This document shows positions 3,551 through 22,093 of a stretch of 64,000 nt of DNA, piece by piece. The notes beneath the pieces are model-generated. The model ran no database searches, had not been told where the DNA came from, and saw only the letters and a list, made by a program, of their open reading frames with translations. How positions within the stretch are numbered: position 1 is the first letter of the stretch; each line of letters starts with the position of its first letter. The DNA lies in the sequence record LC765218.1; one strand, given 5' to 3'. The position numbers were made by a program, and so were the translations under genes.

Positions 3551-4142
3551 TACAGCTGAAGAAATCCGCGCACGTCATGTAACGCGTGGAATCGATGATT
3601 GTCTGAATACAATCATCGCAAACGACGAGATGCAGTTGCCCATTATCCTGGAAGACAGGTTTGTGAAAGAGGTCTTACCCCTACTAGTAAGACCATGGGA
3701 TACTGATAACTTAACCCGTTATCGGAAATACGTACTAGAATTGACAAATCCTCTGCGTGTAGCTTCTAATGAAGCAGAGCCGAAGATTCTTTTTACGGTA
3801 CCAGCTTTGTATCCCAGGCCAGCTACCTCATGGGCAGCCGATGCTACAACTGCATCTATTTCACATGTAGTAGATTACATTGCTATTGAACGTGAACGGT
3901 CTCTGCAAGATCTTGAACCGTATATCACGGAATTCTTAAGTAGTGTATCTATTACTACAACCGTGGACAAAAGTGTTCTCATTCCTTTAGCTAACATCCT
4001 GGCGATGTACAACCGCACTTTCGAAGATGAAAGTGGGAATCCATTGTACACCCTCGCCGGGGGTGTTCCCGTTAAAGGGTCTAATGGTAGTGTACGTCAA
4101 CAGGCTGATACAAGCTCATTTGACGACGATTATGAAGACTGA
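3531..4142 (+). CDS. Conserved core-block hypothetical protein
   Basis: 203-aa ORF overlapping its neighbours, with AAGGAG SD and an acidic C-terminus. Confidence 0.75.
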   Translation: MSQYQTDTAEEIRARHVTRGIDDCLNTIIANDEMQLPIILEDRFVKEVLPLLVRPWDTDNLTRYRKYVLELTNPLRVASNEAEPKILFTVPALYPRPATSWAADATTASISHVVDYIAIERERSLQDLEPYITEFLSSVSITTTVDKSVLIPLANILAMYNRTFEDESGNPLYTLAGGVPVKGSNGSVRQQADTSSFDDDYED

Positions 4143-5277
4143 TAAAACAAAGTTCCCCGGTACATTTCGATATATAAGCCTAGGTGATATTCACCTAGGT
4201 CATCGGACAACTCCTACCTCTCATATTCTGTTAAACTTAGATAAAGTTATTACAGATAAGATGTTAAAGGAACTCGATATGGTCATTATTACTGGTGACC
4301 TATTCGACCGACAGCTTAACTACGGTGATGAATCTGTACATCAGATAAACCGTTGGGCAACAACGTTCATGATGCGCTGCGCTGCAAATAACGTGATGCT
4401 CAGAATAGTTGAAGGTACACCTAGCCATGATAGGGAACAAACCCAGTTCTTTGTAGAGCAAAAAGTAAACGTAAATATTCCAGTCGATCTCCATTACTCT
4501 AAGACACTGTCAATTGAGTATATTGAGAAGCTCGATGCACATTTTCTTTATGTCCCAGATAAATGGCATCCATCAACAGCTGTTACTTTATCGCAGGTAA
4601 AAGAACAGATGGCTTCACTGGGCATAGAGAAGGTTGACTTTGCTATTATGCATGGTGCATTTAGTTATCAGCTACCTTCCATTGTAGAAGAACCAACTCA
4701 CGATGAAGAAGAATACTTAGCTTTAGTAAAACATCAGATCTTAATTGGTCATGTCCACAACATGACTATTAATGATAGAATTTACGCAGCTGGTTCTTTC
4801 GATCGAATCTGTCATGGCGATGAGATCGATAAAGGGTTGTTTCATTTTATCGTTCGTGAGGATGGTAATTTCACGGCGACATTTATAAAGAACAAGAATG
4901 CTAAGAAGTATGTTACTTTAGAAGTTCACGGTTATGATACTAAACAACTTCTTAATAAAGTAAAAGAAACCTTAGCAGAACTACCCAAGTATTCTGCTAT
5001 ACGACTGCGTTGTGACCCAATGGACGTAGCTAACGGCGATATCGAAACATTTCGAGTTGAGTATCCTAACTACGAATGGTCTGTCTTGGTGGAAAAAGCT
5101 ACTAAGAAAAAGAATAGTGTAGCGACAAGTCTAAAAGAATTTGACATGTCTAAGTTTATCGCTATTACACCAGAGACAATTAGTGATCTTCTTAAAGAAG
5201 AGATTTCAAAAGTCACTGATGATCAGACCATACAAGTCCGTTGTCTTGAAAGGTTGGCACAGTTCGTTAGGAATTAA
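4132..5277 (+). CDS. sbcD: SbcD/Mre11-like metallophosphoesterase nuclease (phiKZ gp65-like)
   Basis: Motifs GDIHLG, ITGDLFD, GTPSHD, MHGAF, GHVH. ATG 4132 preferred over the track start at 4027. Confidence 0.9.
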   Translation: MKTDKTKFPGTFRYISLGDIHLGHRTTPTSHILLNLDKVITDKMLKELDMVIITGDLFDRQLNYGDESVHQINRWATTFMMRCAANNVMLRIVEGTPSHDREQTQFFVEQKVNVNIPVDLHYSKTLSIEYIEKLDAHFLYVPDKWHPSTAVTLSQVKEQMASLGIEKVDFAIMHGAFSYQLPSIVEEPTHDEEEYLALVKHQILIGHVHNMTINDRIYAAGSFDRICHGDEIDKGLFHFIVREDGNFTATFIKNKNAKKYVTLEVHGYDTKQLLNKVKETLAELPKYSAIRLRCDPMDVANGDIETFRVEYPNYEWSVLVEKATKKKNSVATSLKEFDMSKFIAITPETISDLLKEEISKVTDDQTIQVRCLERLAQFVRN

Positions 5278-5279
5278 AT

Positions 5280-6107
5280 ATGGAACTCATTGAAAGAGAT
5301 GTCGGACAGCTTCCAGTTAGTATCGGTACTTCTCTTGCCTTTGAGGGATTCTTAGGAATTCACCCGAATCAACCTAAGCATCCGATTGACGTTAAATCGG
5401 TAAAAGAGATATGGGTCAATCTTCGAACATTGGCCCGTAATCTTAATTCAGCTGTAGCTACGGATAAAGTCCATGGCATTAATCCAGCTGATGCTGTTAC
5501 AATCCTAATGCAGGAAATACAGACAATTCCGGTTGCACTGGGGCAACATGGATCGAAAGTCAAGGTGCGTTGGTATATCGCATCTAAAGACGCGGTCAAG
5601 TGGGAATACCCCAAGGCTATTTATAAAGAAGCCAAAACGCCAAAACAAATGGCATATGAAGTATACGAACGTTACGCGGCAATTGAACTTCTGCATCAAA
5701 TGAAAGATGCAGGAATAGAAGTGATGGAGATCGATAAAGCTCCAGTAAGGACCCAAGGTACGATCGCTTTGGTTACCCATTTTCCACATGAGCTATTGTG
5801 GAAACAATATTTCGATCGTCTTCTTTTGTTGGAATCCCACACTGGGAAAATAAAACCGTACAACTTGTGGTACACCAAGCTTAACGGCATAAAAGAGGAT
5901 ACGCCCATCCCATTCACTAAATTCACTCTACAAGTGTTTGGCGATAGCGTTGTTTTCGATGCACAACCAAAAGCTATTAAGGCCCAACTGAAACAGTTAG
6001 CTGCTTCGAGACGTTGGTCGCCTGTAACTACACAAGACAAAATCTATCATGACATTACAACTCATGGCAGTAAAGAACTTAAAGAATGTTACGCGCTATT
6101 ACGCTGA
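5280..6107 (+). CDS. Conserved core protein downstream of sbcD (phiKZ gp66-like by position)
   Basis: 275-aa ORF 2 nt after the sbcD stop; assignment by synteny only. Confidence 0.65.
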   Translation: MELIERDVGQLPVSIGTSLAFEGFLGIHPNQPKHPIDVKSVKEIWVNLRTLARNLNSAVATDKVHGINPADAVTILMQEIQTIPVALGQHGSKVKVRWYIASKDAVKWEYPKAIYKEAKTPKQMAYEVYERYAAIELLHQMKDAGIEVMEIDKAPVRTQGTIALVTHFPHELLWKQYFDRLLLLESHTGKIKPYNLWYTKLNGIKEDTPIPFTKFTLQVFGDSVVFDAQPKAIKAQLKQLAASRRWSPVTTQDKIYHDITTHGSKELKECYALLR

Positions 6108-6192
6108 TTAGAAAGAATACTCTTCATCGATATAGTACGTAGAAACACTTTCGCGAAGTGTAAAAAATTAATCCAATTGGAGCTAACACATC

Positions 6193-6939
6193 ATGTCTCA
6201 ACAATCCCAAGGCCCTGCCCTCTCTCCGTTCTCTGTAATGTCCACTTGGCTACATGCTGATCCGGTAGAAGGTTCTCAGAAACGTCCTAACCTGCGTTTC
6301 GGTGTCTTTGGTAACGTACCTCGCCTGACCGTACGTACTAACGTTCAAGGTGATCTGAATAACGGTAAGATTGAATTCAAAACTGACCTGGCTACTTTTG
6401 CAGCTGCAATGAAGTATGCACGGGATCTTGTCGATGGTAAAGATGTTCCTCAAGAACGTAAGTTTGTTCACCAAGATGACTTTGTTGGCGGTAAAAAGAT
6501 CGATAAGATCATTCCGATCACCACACTGGTAATCGGCCGCGAACAGAACTCTGGTCGTATTTACATTGCTCTTATCTCTTCTCAGCAACAGCGCCCGCGT
6601 ATTCGGTTCTTCTTCGGTCCGTCGAAATATCACACCATCCTGAATGGTGATGGTTCCCCCATCTCTCCGAAAGAGATGTCCGAAGCTTACGCTACCGGTT
6701 TCCTGGAACCGGCCACTGCAATCATTTACCAGATGATGGTAAGCAGTTTTGACCAGAACGCTAAGAACGTAGCCAACCCAGCTAACTTTGGTAACGGTGG
6801 CGGCGGTGGTCAACGTCAAGGTGGCTATAATGGCGGCAACCGTGGTGGTAATAGCGGTGGTGCTCCTCAAGGTTACAATCGTCCGTCCTCCGGTGGTTTC
6901 CAGGACAATGGCTTTGACGATTCCATTCCTGACTTCTAA
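6193..6939 (+). CDS. chmC: ChmC-like nucleus-associated nucleic-acid-binding protein (phiKZ gp67-like)
   Basis: Sits immediately before the sigma-like nvRNAP subunit and PicA. Beta-rich core, G/N/R-rich disordered tail and acidic tip FDDSIPDF. Confidence 0.7.
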   Translation: MSQQSQGPALSPFSVMSTWLHADPVEGSQKRPNLRFGVFGNVPRLTVRTNVQGDLNNGKIEFKTDLATFAAAMKYARDLVDGKDVPQERKFVHQDDFVGGKKIDKIIPITTLVIGREQNSGRIYIALISSQQQRPRIRFFFGPSKYHTILNGDGSPISPKEMSEAYATGFLEPATAIIYQMMVSSFDQNAKNVANPANFGNGGGGGQRQGGYNGGNRGGNSGGAPQGYNRPSSGGFQDNGFDDSIPDF

Positions 6940-6946
6940 ATAAATC

Positions 6947-6983
6947 TACAGCATCTCTTTGGTAAACACCGAGAGATGCTGTA
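6947..6983 (+). terminator. Long hairpin after chmC (probable terminator or processing site)
   Basis: 12-bp stem TACAGCATCTCT/AGAGATGCTGTA; weak U-tract. Confidence 0.55.
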
Positions 6984-7004
6984 TGCCCTCTATTTCCTGA
7001 CATT

Positions 7005-7036
7005 AAAAAATATCTCAGATCTATATTACAACTGTG
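7005..7036 (+). promoter_or_regulatory. Early (vRNAP-type) promoter for the sigma-like/PicA operon
   Basis: TATATTAC at 7022-7029 followed by AACTGTG; matches the phiKZ early promoter core and three other copies in the window. Confidence 0.7.
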
Positions 7037-7061
7037 CATCACCAGAACTAAAGAGGTATAA

Positions 7062-8639
7062 ATGCGCATCGACGTTACTGGGGTACAAGGCAACGGCTTT
7101 GTGGAAGTAACCACTAGCCATAAAGGAAACGAAATCAAGTGGAGTACAAGGGCTTATAGCAAAGTAAAACTCAATGATCCAACTCGTGTTTTCAAGGAAT
7201 TTAATGATTACCTAGAAAGCTGCGATGAGGCTGATCAAGATCGTATCTGGAACAGCTATGTCAAAATCAACGATCTGTTCAAGATGGACTTCGAACCGGC
7301 GCACATCTCCAGTACGCTGATCCATTACATCCATGAACTGTACTCAGCTCTGCCAATGAACAAACTCCGTCGTTGGCTGTTGACTATTGGTAATCTGCAT
7401 ATTCCACCAGAGATCCAGAAAACGATCACTGATGAATCGCGCTACACCAAGCGTGAGCAGACTTATCTTCAACATGACTACATCAACCTCGCTACTGTGG
7501 CACTTGGTCTTCGACCGATGGTTCCGATTTGGGGAGAATACATTGATTCGGGTACGGATCAAGAACTCCACAAAGAAAACGAAGTTGTTGGTTTGATTAG
7601 CCGTTGTGAAATTGCTAACTGGCCGCTACTTGAAAAAGATGAAGTGGGTGAAGATGTAGATACTGCATTTGACAAACTGGAAGGGTACGTCAAATTCTGC
7701 GTTGAAGATGAACCGACTACTTTGGGTAGCCTTTGGCGTGGTATGAGTTCAGTTGAAATTCCAGTACATCTTCGTTCGAAGGTTCTGGTTCGCCGACTGA
7801 CAATCGTTCCTCTGAACGATCCAATGTCCCACTCTATCGTAGCTAACACGTTCCGTTACGTACGTAGCAATCTCAATCCTGCCGAGCGTAGTCCAACTGA
7901 TCGCGTTAATGAAAAGCGTCCAGAAGGCGGCGGTGGTGACGACGAAGATAAAACTTCGTTTATTGAGGCACACAAGACGAAAGGTCGAGTTAGCCCAGGT
8001 GACATTGAGGCATACAACATCGATGCGATGGATTATGAGCTACTGGCACAAACGGTAGATCCTACTATCGACATGGAGAAACTGAGAAAATGTATTAGTT
8101 GCGTGAGTCAGGTCGCGAACTTTGAGATCCGTCCTCACCAAGTACTACTGGCACAATGGGTAATGGCAAAAGCTTTCCCGGCGCGTGCTTTCTATCATAT
8201 CTCCAAACTGCCAGTCAATACACTGTTGGCAACTACCCAGGCTCTACTGTGGCATTGGGGTTACCTTGATGTAGCTGTGTTCCTACAAGTCGAACCTGTT
8301 TATCACGGTGAACATGGATCGACTAATCAGCTTAGTAATACCCGAAGTGGTTCGAGAATTGCTCAGAAGTATAAGGCACAGCTCGATGAACTCTATCCGC
8401 ATATGAAACTCGCTAAGGTCCCCCAATCGGGAGAGATTCCTAAGCCAGATAACATGGCGGGTATTGCAGTGAATAACTGTAACCAGTCCATCCGCTCCTC
8501 TACTTGGATCTATCATGGTCCACCTGAGCTGTTCAAGCTTTCTGGACAGATTGCTCAGAACAACATTCTGATTCCACCTCCAAATATCAAGCACACGATC
8601 ACCGAAGTGGTTCTACACCTCGCTCAGATCAACCAGTAA
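7062..8639 (+). CDS. Non-virion RNA polymerase sigma-like/promoter-specificity subunit (phiKZ gp68-like)
   Basis: 525 aa, with size and position matching gp68 between ChmC and PicA; AGAGG SD. Confidence 0.72.
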   Translation: MRIDVTGVQGNGFVEVTTSHKGNEIKWSTRAYSKVKLNDPTRVFKEFNDYLESCDEADQDRIWNSYVKINDLFKMDFEPAHISSTLIHYIHELYSALPMNKLRRWLLTIGNLHIPPEIQKTITDESRYTKREQTYLQHDYINLATVALGLRPMVPIWGEYIDSGTDQELHKENEVVGLISRCEIANWPLLEKDEVGEDVDTAFDKLEGYVKFCVEDEPTTLGSLWRGMSSVEIPVHLRSKVLVRRLTIVPLNDPMSHSIVANTFRYVRSNLNPAERSPTDRVNEKRPEGGGGDDEDKTSFIEAHKTKGRVSPGDIEAYNIDAMDYELLAQTVDPTIDMEKLRKCISCVSQVANFEIRPHQVLLAQWVMAKAFPARAFYHISKLPVNTLLATTQALLWHWGYLDVAVFLQVEPVYHGEHGSTNQLSNTRSGSRIAQKYKAQLDELYPHMKLAKVPQSGEIPKPDNMAGIAVNNCNQSIRSSTWIYHGPPELFKLSGQIAQNNILIPPPNIKHTITEVVLHLAQINQ

Positions 8640-19375: not shown

Positions 19376-19430
19376 CGGCATAAAGCTCCTACCTTCGGGT
19401 AGGAGCTATGCTTTATTTTTTTTTATTTTA
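19376..19430. terminator. Bidirectional terminator
   Basis: GCATAA-AGCTCCTACC-TTCG-GGTAGGAGCT-ATGC followed by a long T run. Confidence 0.85.
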
Positions 19431-19845
19431 ATCCAAGATCTTTCTCGATTTGTCTAGCTTGCGATGTACTTTGAATAGCCTTCGACTCTGCAAGTTCAAT
19501 CATGAACAAACAATCATTAAAGGGTAGTTCAAAGAACTCTAGTAAAGATAAACCATAAATGTCATTGATCTTGTAATTGACAAACTTCCGTATCCAAGTT
19601 CTTTCAGGTCCACCTTCTACGACGTTTTCCTTAGGATGCATTCTAACCAGATCTAAAGGATCAGCCTCTGGTGAATCATGATCGAAAATACCGTAGTCTT
19701 TATGGTAGGCCTTCCTGGTCAACATTTCGGCAATAGCTGGCCTTACGGCATCTAGCGTTCGCACGAGTTCATCGAATGCACTCTTACCATTAACAGTCTT
19801 GCGACCGAAAGAGTTCATTGTAACGTGCCCGTTGTCGTCCTCCAA
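19423..19845 (-). CDS. Tail-assembly chaperone T/gp51-like segment, probably the frameshift extension of the upstream gene
   Basis: TTG start without an obvious SD; the frame is open 49 codons further upstream. The C-terminal IYGLSLLEFFELP motif resembles gpT/gpE'/gp51-type segments. Confidence 0.55.
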   Translation of the reverse strand: MEDDNGHVTMNSFGRKTVNGKSAFDELVRTLDAVRPAIAEMLTRKAYHKDYGIFDHDSPEADPLDLVRMHPKENVVEGGPERTWIRKFVNYKINDIYGLSLLEFFELPFNDCLFMIELAESKAIQSTSQARQIEKDLGLK

Positions 19846-19883
19846 ATTAATTGTTAGACGACTATGCCGGGGGTCCTCGTTGA

Positions 19884-21485
19884 TTACTCCAGGTGCTTGG
19901 CTTTCTGGCCCGCCAACGTGAAAAATATTGCCATCATGTCTAGCGGTACAAGGTGCGGGAAACGTTCGTTGAATGCTTGGCCCTGAGGACCTTTACATTC
20001 TTTGCAGTTATGCGATGGAAGAGCTACCACAGCCAGTACACAAGAGTTAGTATACTCATGTACGGTATCAAAGAACTGCTCCGCGTACTGCGGATCACTC
20101 AGAGTGTTCGCCAGATAATCACTAATGATTTCCTGATCGTCGGAAAGCAGTTGATCTTCGAAGTCTTCTACATCGTCGTCCTTTTCATAGATACCATCTA
20201 CCCAATGAGCATACTGCATGGCGATAGTAGCTTTACTCAGTTTATCAATGTACGCTGAACGTTGAACACCATGTGGCGGTTCGTTAAATGTACCTTGAGA
20301 CATTTCGATCAATGTCTGAGACCACTGAGAAGCAGCCATCTTACGTTGAGCGATAGTCGGGATAGCAAGACGAACACCAATATCACCAAACCAGAATACT
20401 TTCTTACCGCCAATACCGAAACCTTCACGGTAAGCTTTGAAGTCTTCATCCGTAGCAGGTGCAAATTTCTTAGCGATAAATTTACGCTGATCATTACTGA
20501 ATACAGTGTTGTCAAACCAAACGATAGACGACATGTTAAGTTTTGCAGTGATACGAGCCGTACAGTTGTCCGGGTCTGCAATACATGGAACGTCGTAGTT
20601 GAATCCATCAATGTACATTGTAGAAGCTAGGGCATGATGCAGGATAGCTTCATCAAAGATCGATAGTTCATGTTCCAGGTCACTTGGAGTAATGAAGGAC
20701 TTGTTCGATGCAATAACACAAGACAGAGCCAGGTCAGTCATCGCGTTCATCATTACGGAACCAGCGTTAGAGAACGACATACCTTTGGTTTGCATTCCCA
20801 GCCGTAGCTTGATCTGCTGCATTTCTGTTTGCAATGCGACTACTTCAGTAAGTGTCGGAGCACGCAGGCGAAGCCAGATACCCGAACGAGGCATAAACGT
20901 TTCGTATGTCGCACCAAGACCAGATTTCTTGGAGAGGTATGCCAACAGTTCTTCTTTACTGTGTCGTTTATTACGATCGATCTTTTGAGAAGGGCGGCCT
21001 GGTCGAATAAGGTTACCGTTATCATGACCAGTAATACCTTGTTGCCATACAGAACCTTCACGTTCCGTCCCACCGATAGGAGTGGGGTCAAGGTTAGTAT
21101 GGTTCATACCAGCTACTAGAGAAATCAACCAATCTCGGTCACTGCTAGTAGTAGTGAGATCACCTTGGTGCATTCCATTCAATAGCGCCGAGTGACGTTC
21201 CAATACCTGGTTAAAGGTCTTGGGGTTTTCTAGAATGAAACTCATCAAAGAGGTCATACCAGGAATAGCTTCACTAGAACAAGAACGTGTCTCAGTGAAG
21301 TTAACTGGTTTCTGGTCAATTACCAGAGGAGGTAGTTCAGCAGCAGGCGAAGAAGATACTTCTTCCGCAGGTGCGTCCGGTAGAGTGGGACCCGTGGGCC
21401 CCTGTTCTACTTCTGCATCAGCTTGCTGTTCCCAATTACCCTCAGCAGGATAATTGTCTTCTTTATCCATATCAAGCTCTTGCAT
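19884..21485 (-). CDS. Putative tail/baseplate assembly chaperone (T4 gp26-like or lambda G-like; phiKZ gp77-region)
   Basis: 533 aa with two Cys pairs (CIADPDNC, CKEC) forming a Zn site; ends ...AIFFTL... as gp26-like chaperones do. Confidence 0.55.
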   Translation of the reverse strand: MQELDMDKEDNYPAEGNWEQQADAEVEQGPTGPTLPDAPAEEVSSSPAAELPPLVIDQKPVNFTETRSCSSEAIPGMTSLMSFILENPKTFNQVLERHSALLNGMHQGDLTTTSSDRDWLISLVAGMNHTNLDPTPIGGTEREGSVWQQGITGHDNGNLIRPGRPSQKIDRNKRHSKEELLAYLSKKSGLGATYETFMPRSGIWLRLRAPTLTEVVALQTEMQQIKLRLGMQTKGMSFSNAGSVMMNAMTDLALSCVIASNKSFITPSDLEHELSIFDEAILHHALASTMYIDGFNYDVPCIADPDNCTARITAKLNMSSIVWFDNTVFSNDQRKFIAKKFAPATDEDFKAYREGFGIGGKKVFWFGDIGVRLAIPTIAQRKMAASQWSQTLIEMSQGTFNEPPHGVQRSAYIDKLSKATIAMQYAHWVDGIYEKDDDVEDFEDQLLSDDQEIISDYLANTLSDPQYAEQFFDTVHEYTNSCVLAVVALPSHNCKECKGPQGQAFNERFPHLVPLDMMAIFFTLAGQKAKHLE

Positions 21486-21496
21486 TTTGTATTACC

Positions 21497-22093
21497 TTAT
21501 TTCACGAAGGAAACAGTATCAACACCAGCTTCTTGCATCTTAGCAATGAGACCCATCAGCAGTGGTTGAACAGCTGTTTCTACTTTATGTTGGAGATTTG
21601 CGTAACCCAAAGTCAGCTTACCGATTTGATCGAGATCAGCCAGATCAGGTGTACCAGTTTTGTTTACGTGAAGAATACTAAGAGCTTCCAGAGCACTGAT
21701 CATCTGTTCAATATCAGACATGCAGTTTTGCAGATCTTTAGAGAAACCTTCAGGATCACTGAGTTTACTCAGAATTTCTTCACGACGCTCCAGCGCCGGA
21801 ATGATAACAATGGAAGTAGCATTAAGAGCAGCAGCTGTAGTGCGATACAATTCGCGAAGAATGGCCCAGCCATCTTCTTTAATGAGTTGTTGTGCTGCTA
21901 CAGCAGAAACTTCTACAGCTTGGTCCAGTTGTTCTTTCGGGGACAGTGCGGTCATTTGATTGTGCTCCAATTTTGGATTATGGGGGAATATTTTATCAAG
22001 GGCTTCAGAGAGCCGTTTTTCATCTTCAGGAGTTGGTTTTGGATGGTGTATTGTATCCATCAAATTAAACGGCAGCTCACTAAACTTACTCAT
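21497..22093 (-). CDS. Conserved helical hypothetical protein
   Basis: 198 aa with AGGAG SD. Confidence 0.7.
   Translation of the reverse strand: MSKFSELPFNLMDTIHHPKPTPEDEKRLSEALDKIFPHNPKLEHNQMTALSPKEQLDQAVEVSAVAAQQLIKEDGWAILRELYRTTAAALNATSIVIIPALERREEILSKLSDPEGFSKDLQNCMSDIEQMISALEALSILHVNKTGTPDLADLDQIGKLTLGYANLQHKVETAVQPLLMGLIAKMQEAGVDTVSFVK

Follow-up and report, generated by a model that had tools for sequence, protein, structure and literature searches.

Overlapping reading frames at the gp77 locus

Within a 64 000 nt stretch of sequence record LC765218.1 (hereafter the window), a minus-strand gene for a 533 aa protein is overlapped near its 3′ end by a second open reading frame (ORF), and an earlier note made from the sequence alone had proposed that a programmed −1 ribosomal frameshift joins the two. 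Over a 2.3 kb region, the sequence is 100 % identical to Pseudomonas phage BRkr, 99.7–99.8 % identical to phiHQ, PS119XW, PA1C and others, 82 % identical to HPP-Temi (genus Pawinskivirus) and around 66 % identical to PhiPA3; the window phage, BRkr, is a relative of PhiPA3. The 533 aa gene is the orthologue of phiKZ gp77, in agreement with the earlier assignment to a phiKZ-like phage, and of PhiPA3 gp074 and 201phi2-1 gp136, with synteny kept; it also corresponds to EL gp47. Counterparts of the downstream ORF are PhiPA3 gp073, 201phi2-1 gp135 and phiKZ PHIKZ076.4. In the supplement of Prichard et al. (2023), phiKZ gp077 is Chimalliviridae core gene cg18, annotated as ‘hypothetical protein’.

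The locus comprises the following features:

21485..19884, minus strand: zero-frame gene, 533 aa (the short product), with its stop codon at 19886–19884 and a match to phrog_4585 at E 1e-156
19884..19992, minus strand: overlap of 109 nt in which the zero and −1 frames are both open
19962–19956, minus strand: second heptamer, T_TTC_CCG, in phase but rejected as a conserved slip site
19926–19920, minus strand: proposed slip site, the heptamer A_TTT_TTC, in phase with the 533 aa gene
19423..19923, minus strand: −1-frame coding region after the proposed slip, with 166 codons counted from the re-read TTT and a stop codon at 19425–19423
19819..19883, minus strand: stretch called intergenic in public records, whose −1 frame encodes the conserved peptide SRL..[IV][ND]....NGH[VI]
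19423..19818, minus strand: downstream coding sequence as annotated in the GenBank record of BRkr, 131 aa from ATG 19818

The downstream frame is −1 relative to the 533 aa gene. It opens at 19992 and shares with that gene its last 109 nt, of which only the part 3′ of the heptamer (19884–19919) would be read in both frames. The heptamer covers the codons ATA TTT TTC, i.e. I520, F521 and F522, and the 533 aa protein ends in ...MMAIFFTLAGQKAKHLE (also given as ...IFFTLAGQKAKHLE). The downstream ORF proper (19845..19423) has a TTG start and an in-frame ATG at 19818, and 49 codons are open 5′ of TTG 19845 without any ATG, GTG or TTG. No usable Shine–Dalgarno sequence is present 5′ of TTG 19845, and the GGAGGA at 19843–19838 ends 19 nt before ATG 19818. 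On rechecking, the coordinates, the frames, the overlap, the phase of both heptamers and the missing Shine–Dalgarno sequence were all found to be as first described.

Conservation of the −1 relation and of the slip site

The comparison covered 27 lineages, i.e. the window phage, 19 GenBank phages, five IMG/VR contigs and two Logan contigs. The 20 GenBank phages, including that of the window, cover nine host genera. Those compared with it were the Pseudomonas phages HPP-Temi, PhiPA3, 201phi2-1, Phabio, Viktualia and phiKZ; and phages of other hosts, namely Serratia PCH45 and Moabite, Klebsiella FBKp24, Erwinia Mortimer and Machina, Salmonella SPFM2, Xanthomonas LucasX, Ralstonia FLC1-1B and RSF1, Vibrio pir03 and sm033, Halocynthia phage JM-2012 and Bacillus AgentSmith.

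The downstream ORF lies in the −1 frame in 27 of 27 lineages, and in all 27 this frame is open across a T-run back into the upstream gene (by 55–238 nt in the 20 GenBank phages). The frame is kept although the distance from the upstream stop to the annotated downstream start ranges from −4 to +218 nt in the same 20 phages. The −1 overlap, the T-run and constraint at synonymous sites, for which the earlier note had suggested inspecting orthologues, were all found to be conserved, and a −1 extension of the 533 aa protein is the most likely explanation of the arrangement.

Were the two simply separate genes, with the downstream ORF translated from ATG 19818 or TTG 19845 into a protein of 131–140 aa without any frameshift, there would be no reason to hold the −1 frame in every lineage while the spacing varies to this extent. 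They are annotated as separate genes in all public records, and an in-frame ATG does occur at the same alignment position in the window phage, HPP-Temi, PhiPA3, 201phi2-1 and Viktualia. However, this position is occupied by F in Phabio and by H in phiKZ, 14 of 20 lineages lack any ATG, GTG or TTG from the upstream −1-frame stop as far as the annotated start, and a Shine–Dalgarno sequence at a usable distance is absent. Furthermore, coding-type conservation reaches 5′ of both candidate starts. Between the window phage and HPP-Temi, the 63 nt linker contains seven substitutions, six of them at third positions of the −1 frame, with 19 of 21 residues identical, and the two other frames contain stop codons. 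To judge from this substitution pattern, the stretch annotated as intergenic is evolving as coding sequence in the −1 frame. Taken as two separate genes without a frameshift, the locus would thus be explained in an improbable way.

Moreover, a hidden Markov model built from seven Pseudomonas-type extensions finds nine of 13 distant lineages, among them the Bacillus phage, at E<1e-4, which indicates that the extension is one ancient domain (phrog_12109). It was modelled as a disordered linker of around 42 residues followed by a helical domain of around 120 residues, with a predicted local distance difference test score (pLDDT) of 66, and its matches were limited to its own jumbo-phage orthologues.

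The −1 ORF of phiKZ has 171 codons, of which the first 91, i.e. over half of the extension, are unannotated and the last 80 constitute PHIKZ076.4; elsewhere, the extension appears as a ‘hypothetical protein’ with an arbitrary start. The annotated downstream start in Phabio, Mortimer, sm033, AgentSmith and a further locus (L032) lies 131–215 nt past the upstream stop, at the first ATG, and these late starts drop 40–70 conserved codons of the extension. The −1 ORF is found at locus positions 3865–4365 in phiKZ (AF399011) and at 4041–4500 in the phiKZ-type phage PhiPizzaParty, where it is without any annotation on that strand. Two tiny ORFs on the opposite strand (locus positions 4229–4339 and 4394–4486) have been called over it in PhiPizzaParty; they are probably spurious.

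An in-frame fusion of the gp77-like protein with the extension was found neither among 80 homologues retrieved by a word-indexed search nor in the best 150 of the 1650 clusters that a profile search of 1.84 billion representative proteins yielded at E≤0.001; all of these 150 end at most around 27 residues from the end of the profile. Two frames that are kept, neither fused nor separated, are what would be expected if both products were needed at a set ratio. The same results bear on the notion of a sequencing or assembly artefact or a pseudogene, according to which the true gene is one ORF of around 690 aa split by an error in homopolymer length. While the break does fall on a homopolymer, a classical site of sequencing errors, the layout recurs in 27 genomes and contigs from different laboratories over two decades, including the original phiKZ and 201phi2-1 records, the clusters just mentioned, judged from the best 150, contain no in-frame version, and the zero-frame tail past the T-run is itself conserved (TLAGQK..HL). 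The probability of such an artefact is therefore negligible.

In the Serratia/Klebsiella clade (PCH45, Moabite and FBKp24), the zero frame continues for 112–133 nt past the T-run, encoding a tail of around 40 residues, which makes the dual-coding overlap much longer than that of the Pseudomonas phages.

As to the slip site itself, the earlier note had offered two heptamers, the T-run encoding FF and T_TTC_CCG, and only the former has held up. In at least eight lineages the −1 frame first opens merely 6–12 nt before the T-run, which excludes sites further upstream, including T_TTC_CCG, and within the permissive window of these lineages the T-run is the sole common slippery element. T_TTC_CCG is canonical just in the window phage and PhiPA3, and in phiKZ, Phabio, one further locus (L031) and others the −1 frame opens only downstream of this position. 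An in-phase T-run encoding an invariant FF (VF-L in AgentSmith), by contrast, is present in every overlap. It reads T_TTT_TTN in 16 of 20 GenBank phages; PhiPA3 and Phabio have G_TTT_TTT, the window phage and HPP-Temi A_TTT_TTC, and the seven IMG/VR and Logan contigs G_TTT_TTT, T_TTT_TTT, A_TTT_TTC or A_TTT_TTT.

All 20 phages use TTT as the first Phe codon, compared with a background of 37 % TTT among the Phe codons of the same genes (binomial P around 2e-9), and the wobble base preceding it, which belongs to codons for six different amino acids, is T in 16 of 20, compared with a background of 32 % (P around 1.5e-5); both P values ignore phylogeny, and the lineages span many genera. Judged by this codon and wobble-base bias, the slip site is under selection at the nucleotide level.

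The T-run would also suit the main mechanistic rival, transcriptional slippage, in which an extra U, inserted at the T-run by the RNA polymerase of phage or host, places both parts in a single frame in some mRNAs. Homopolymer slippage giving −1-frame products is known from bacteria and insertion sequence elements, most lineages have six or seven consecutive Ts, and the phage uses unusual multisubunit RNA polymerases. Known sites of this kind usually require around eight to nine or more identical bases, however, and the clade of the window has only five Ts (ATTTTTC), with the arrangement still kept. In addition, with the T favoured at the wobble position before it, the site becomes a classical X_XXY_YYZ heptamer. 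Transcriptional slippage consequently has only a small chance of being the correct mechanism.

Around 20 nt following the heptamer (19899–19919 in the window, ACGTTGGCGGGCCAGAAAG) are near-invariant in Pseudomonas-type phages that share around 50 % protein identity. Dual coding accounts for much of this invariance, and an extra signal, e.g. one acting on the ribosome, is possible.

Proposed frameshift and points against it

Taking these lines of evidence together, we propose, with a probability of roughly 0.85, that the gp77-family gene yields two proteins through a −1 programmed ribosomal frameshift on the T-run. This frameshift, which the comparative evidence strongly supports, would very probably be a conserved trait of a core gene that all nucleus-forming jumbo phages have in common, and one that public annotations have missed throughout. 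That the shift is ribosomal rather than transcriptional we infer, as we do its efficiency and the function of the gene.

In the window, a share of the ribosomes would slip back by one base on A_UUU_UUC (19926–19920, minus strand), with the A-site tRNA-Phe re-pairing from UUC to UUU and the P-site tRNA-Phe from UUU to AUU, the latter with two of three pairs; most relatives have a fully canonical U_UUU_UUY. Ribosomes that do not slip would stop 11 codons later and release the 533 aa protein. Those that do would continue in the −1 frame, across the ‘intergenic’ DNA and along the downstream ‘gene’, as far as the stop codon at 19425–19423, giving a long product of around 687 aa, i.e. 522 shared residues followed by 165 that form the flexible linker and the helical domain of around 120 residues. 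The two product sizes expected initially, 533 and around 687 aa, therefore stand. A stimulatory RNA structure is apparently not needed, as in lambda G/GT.

Several observations weigh against this interpretation or limit it. The heptamer of the window is non-canonical at its first base and contains just five Ts, i.e. its A-site half is perfect and its P-site half allows two of three pairs, and slippage here could be inefficient. FF is conserved as protein sequence, which accounts for some of the conservation of the T-run. Folding of the 75 nt after the heptamer was no more stable than that of shuffled controls, with z-scores of the minimum free energy from −1.4 to +1.6 in 20 lineages and of +0.8 in the window, and RNAalifold returned no consensus pairs on 14 Pseudomonas-type sequences, pseudoknots as such not being modelled. 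The stems of the weak pseudoknot suggested in the earlier note are not kept in PhiPA3 or 201phi2-1; it could not be confirmed, and neither it nor any nested hairpin has thermodynamic or covariation support. Likewise, no Shine–Dalgarno-like motif was seen 5′ of the slip site in the relatives aligned. Finally, ATG 19818 could give an independent 131 aa product, beside or instead of the fusion. Considering the weaker first base of the heptamer and the available ATG in the clade of the window, such a product may coexist with the fusion.

We found no account of this frameshift, nor any functional study of phiKZ gp77, in the literature searched, which lay mostly outside subscription journals, in keeping with the initial impression that none had been described for phiKZ-like phages. 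Literature matches to ‘gp77’ concerned the numbering of other phages; Goslar gp081 is unmentioned in the preprint on the Goslar virion structure, and a transposon sequencing (Tn-seq) preprint does not take up the PCH45 orthologue in its main text.

If two products are made, every public annotation of the locus is wrong or incomplete, and proteomic, Tn-seq and structural work on these phages has relied on an incorrect protein set for its searches. This matters since the gp77 family is one of around 70 core genes of nucleus-forming jumbo phages, and since a fixed ratio of short to long form is typical of assembly factors, which would give a concrete handle on the role of this core gene. The proposal would also add a deeply conserved recoding site in a family of at least 1650 sequence clusters, with the frame relation examined in 27 lineages, and would suggest that A/G_UUU_UUY variants of the slip site are tolerated in nature.

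Possible function, known frameshift systems and neighbouring genes

The closest parallels to the proposed frameshift are those of the tail assembly chaperone genes, lambda G/GT and P2 E/E+E′, which Xu, Hendrix and Duda reportedly described in 2004. There, as is proposed here, ribosomes slip by −1 on a simple heptamer towards the 3′ end of a phage gene for a non-virion protein, RNA structure is not required, and a short major form is accompanied by a C-terminally extended minor form, which in the present case is deduced by comparison of genomes. The arrangement is also kept across divergent phages despite sequence divergence, and P2 likewise slips on a T-run. In contrast to these systems, the upstream part comprises 533 aa instead of around 100–150 aa, the gp77 gene does not lie between the tube and tape-measure genes but has a virion RNA polymerase subunit gene and a helicase gene as neighbours, and no similarity to these chaperones, in sequence or in fold, is detectable for either part.

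The T7 gene 10A/10B pair and Escherichia coli dnaX are similar in that a −1 frameshift in a bacterial system gives two C-terminal variants at a fixed ratio, and T7 gene 10 slips on a U-rich Phe site. Their gene families and roles differ, though (a capsid protein and a clamp-loader subunit, respectively), and dnaX relies on an upstream Shine–Dalgarno-like element and a downstream hairpin, neither of which was found at the gp77 site.

The function of the 533 aa protein was approached by profile and structure comparison. It matched no entry in Pfam or NCBIfam and no named PHROG. Its AlphaFold2 model, based on an alignment of 54 sequences, reached a pLDDT of 85 and a predicted template modelling (TM) score of 0.83, with residues 1–47 disordered. 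In a Foldseek search of predicted viral structures (BFVD), jumbo-phage orthologues ranked first, followed by proteins of 225–285 aa named ‘Baseplate hub assembly protein, bacteriophage T4-like’, ‘Baseplate hub subunit’ or ‘Baseplate protein’. These baseplate-named matches had E values of 3.6e-5 to 2.4e-3 and target-normalized TM scores of 0.47–0.58 (3.6e-5 to 6.5e-4 and 0.53–0.58 for the T4-like hub assembly entries), while entries named ‘tail assembly chaperone’ appeared at E 0.66 and 3.4 only. Given these values, the gene context and the lack of a chaperone match in Pfam, PHROG or NCBIfam, the original designation as a lambda G/GT-type chaperone is unsupported by the tests run.

A resemblance to T4 gp26, the second suggestion made at the outset, has found partial support. 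The orthologue in the Bacillus phage is annotated as ‘putative baseplate hub assembly protein’, and Leiman et al. (2010, PMC3004832) list T4 gp26 and gp51 as chaperones of hub assembly. In the T4 record (NC_000866), both proteins match PF12322 at E 1e-52 to 1e-64, and belonging to the same Pfam family makes them paralogues. Their genes lie side by side in divergent orientation (locus positions 5803–7229), and the record lists an internal product, 26′. Like the T4 family, the gp77 family has four invariant Cys in two pairs (C301 and C308, C494 and C497 in the 533 aa protein), and both apparently are non-virion assembly factors. In the records of 201phi2-1 (gp138/139) and phiKZ (gp79/80), neighbours of this gene are marked as virion proteins and the gene itself is not, which fits a non-structural role.

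This resemblance has to be set against a number of results. PF12322 was matched by neither the window protein nor 10 diverse orthologues, even at E values up to 10, and solved structures gave the 533 aa model no match, by fold or by sequence profile. The hhalign probability for gp77 versus the gp51 family stays below 40 %, at 9 % and, with a broader gp77 alignment, at 38.9 % (E 3.2e-4), the latter match spanning 44 columns around a CxxC motif. The T4 genes 26 and 51 are without a comparable −1 extension. Moreover, the gp77-family protein is twice the size of gp26 and gp51, and its extension domain has no counterpart in gp51. The end of the extension had initially been likened to segments of gpT, gpE′ and gp51, but hhalign gave a probability of 0.1 % for the extension being the missing C-terminal half of a gp51-like protein, and the comparison to gp51 does not hold.

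The likeness to gp26/gp51 is therefore best taken as a lead and not as family membership. On this basis we only tentatively regard the 533 aa protein as a non-virion factor in morphogenesis, of the kind represented by the T4 hub-assembly proteins gp26 and gp51, a role that it may well turn out not to have. Through this lead, the analogy to G/GT, i.e. two forms of an assembly factor, would be plausible: the long form, the rarer of the two, would bear an additional binding domain, following the logic of G/GT without homology. A bolder version, which we consider rather doubtful, is that the gp77 frameshift is the jumbo-phage counterpart of the universal G/GT recoding, with a large gp51/gp26-like hub or tape-measure chaperone made in two forms at a fixed ratio from a slip site that predates the split between Chimalliviridae and the Bacillus AR9/PBS1-like phages. 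If this were true, the rule of chaperone frameshifting would extend to a lineage without a known case and would be linked to the T4 hub assembly proteins.

Two further features flank the pair of ORFs:

21497..22093, minus strand: upstream neighbour, 198 aa, orthologue of phiKZ gp78 (phrog_14050), directly 5′ in every Chimalliviridae locus examined
19384..19407, no strand assigned: 10 bp GC-rich hairpin between convergent genes, a likely terminator of the transcript with both ORFs

The gp78-like gene, encoding 150–260 aa across loci, abuts or overlaps the start of the gp77-like gene in every locus examined, suggesting translational coupling and a common function. Besides this gene, the neighbours of the gp77 family include a gp79-like gene, small ORFs, a helicase gene and the gene encoding the beta subunit of a virion RNA polymerase. 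At the other end, the hairpin at 19384–19407 separates the minus-strand −1 ORF, with its stop at 19423, from small plus-strand genes ending at around 19373, and looks like a bidirectional terminator.

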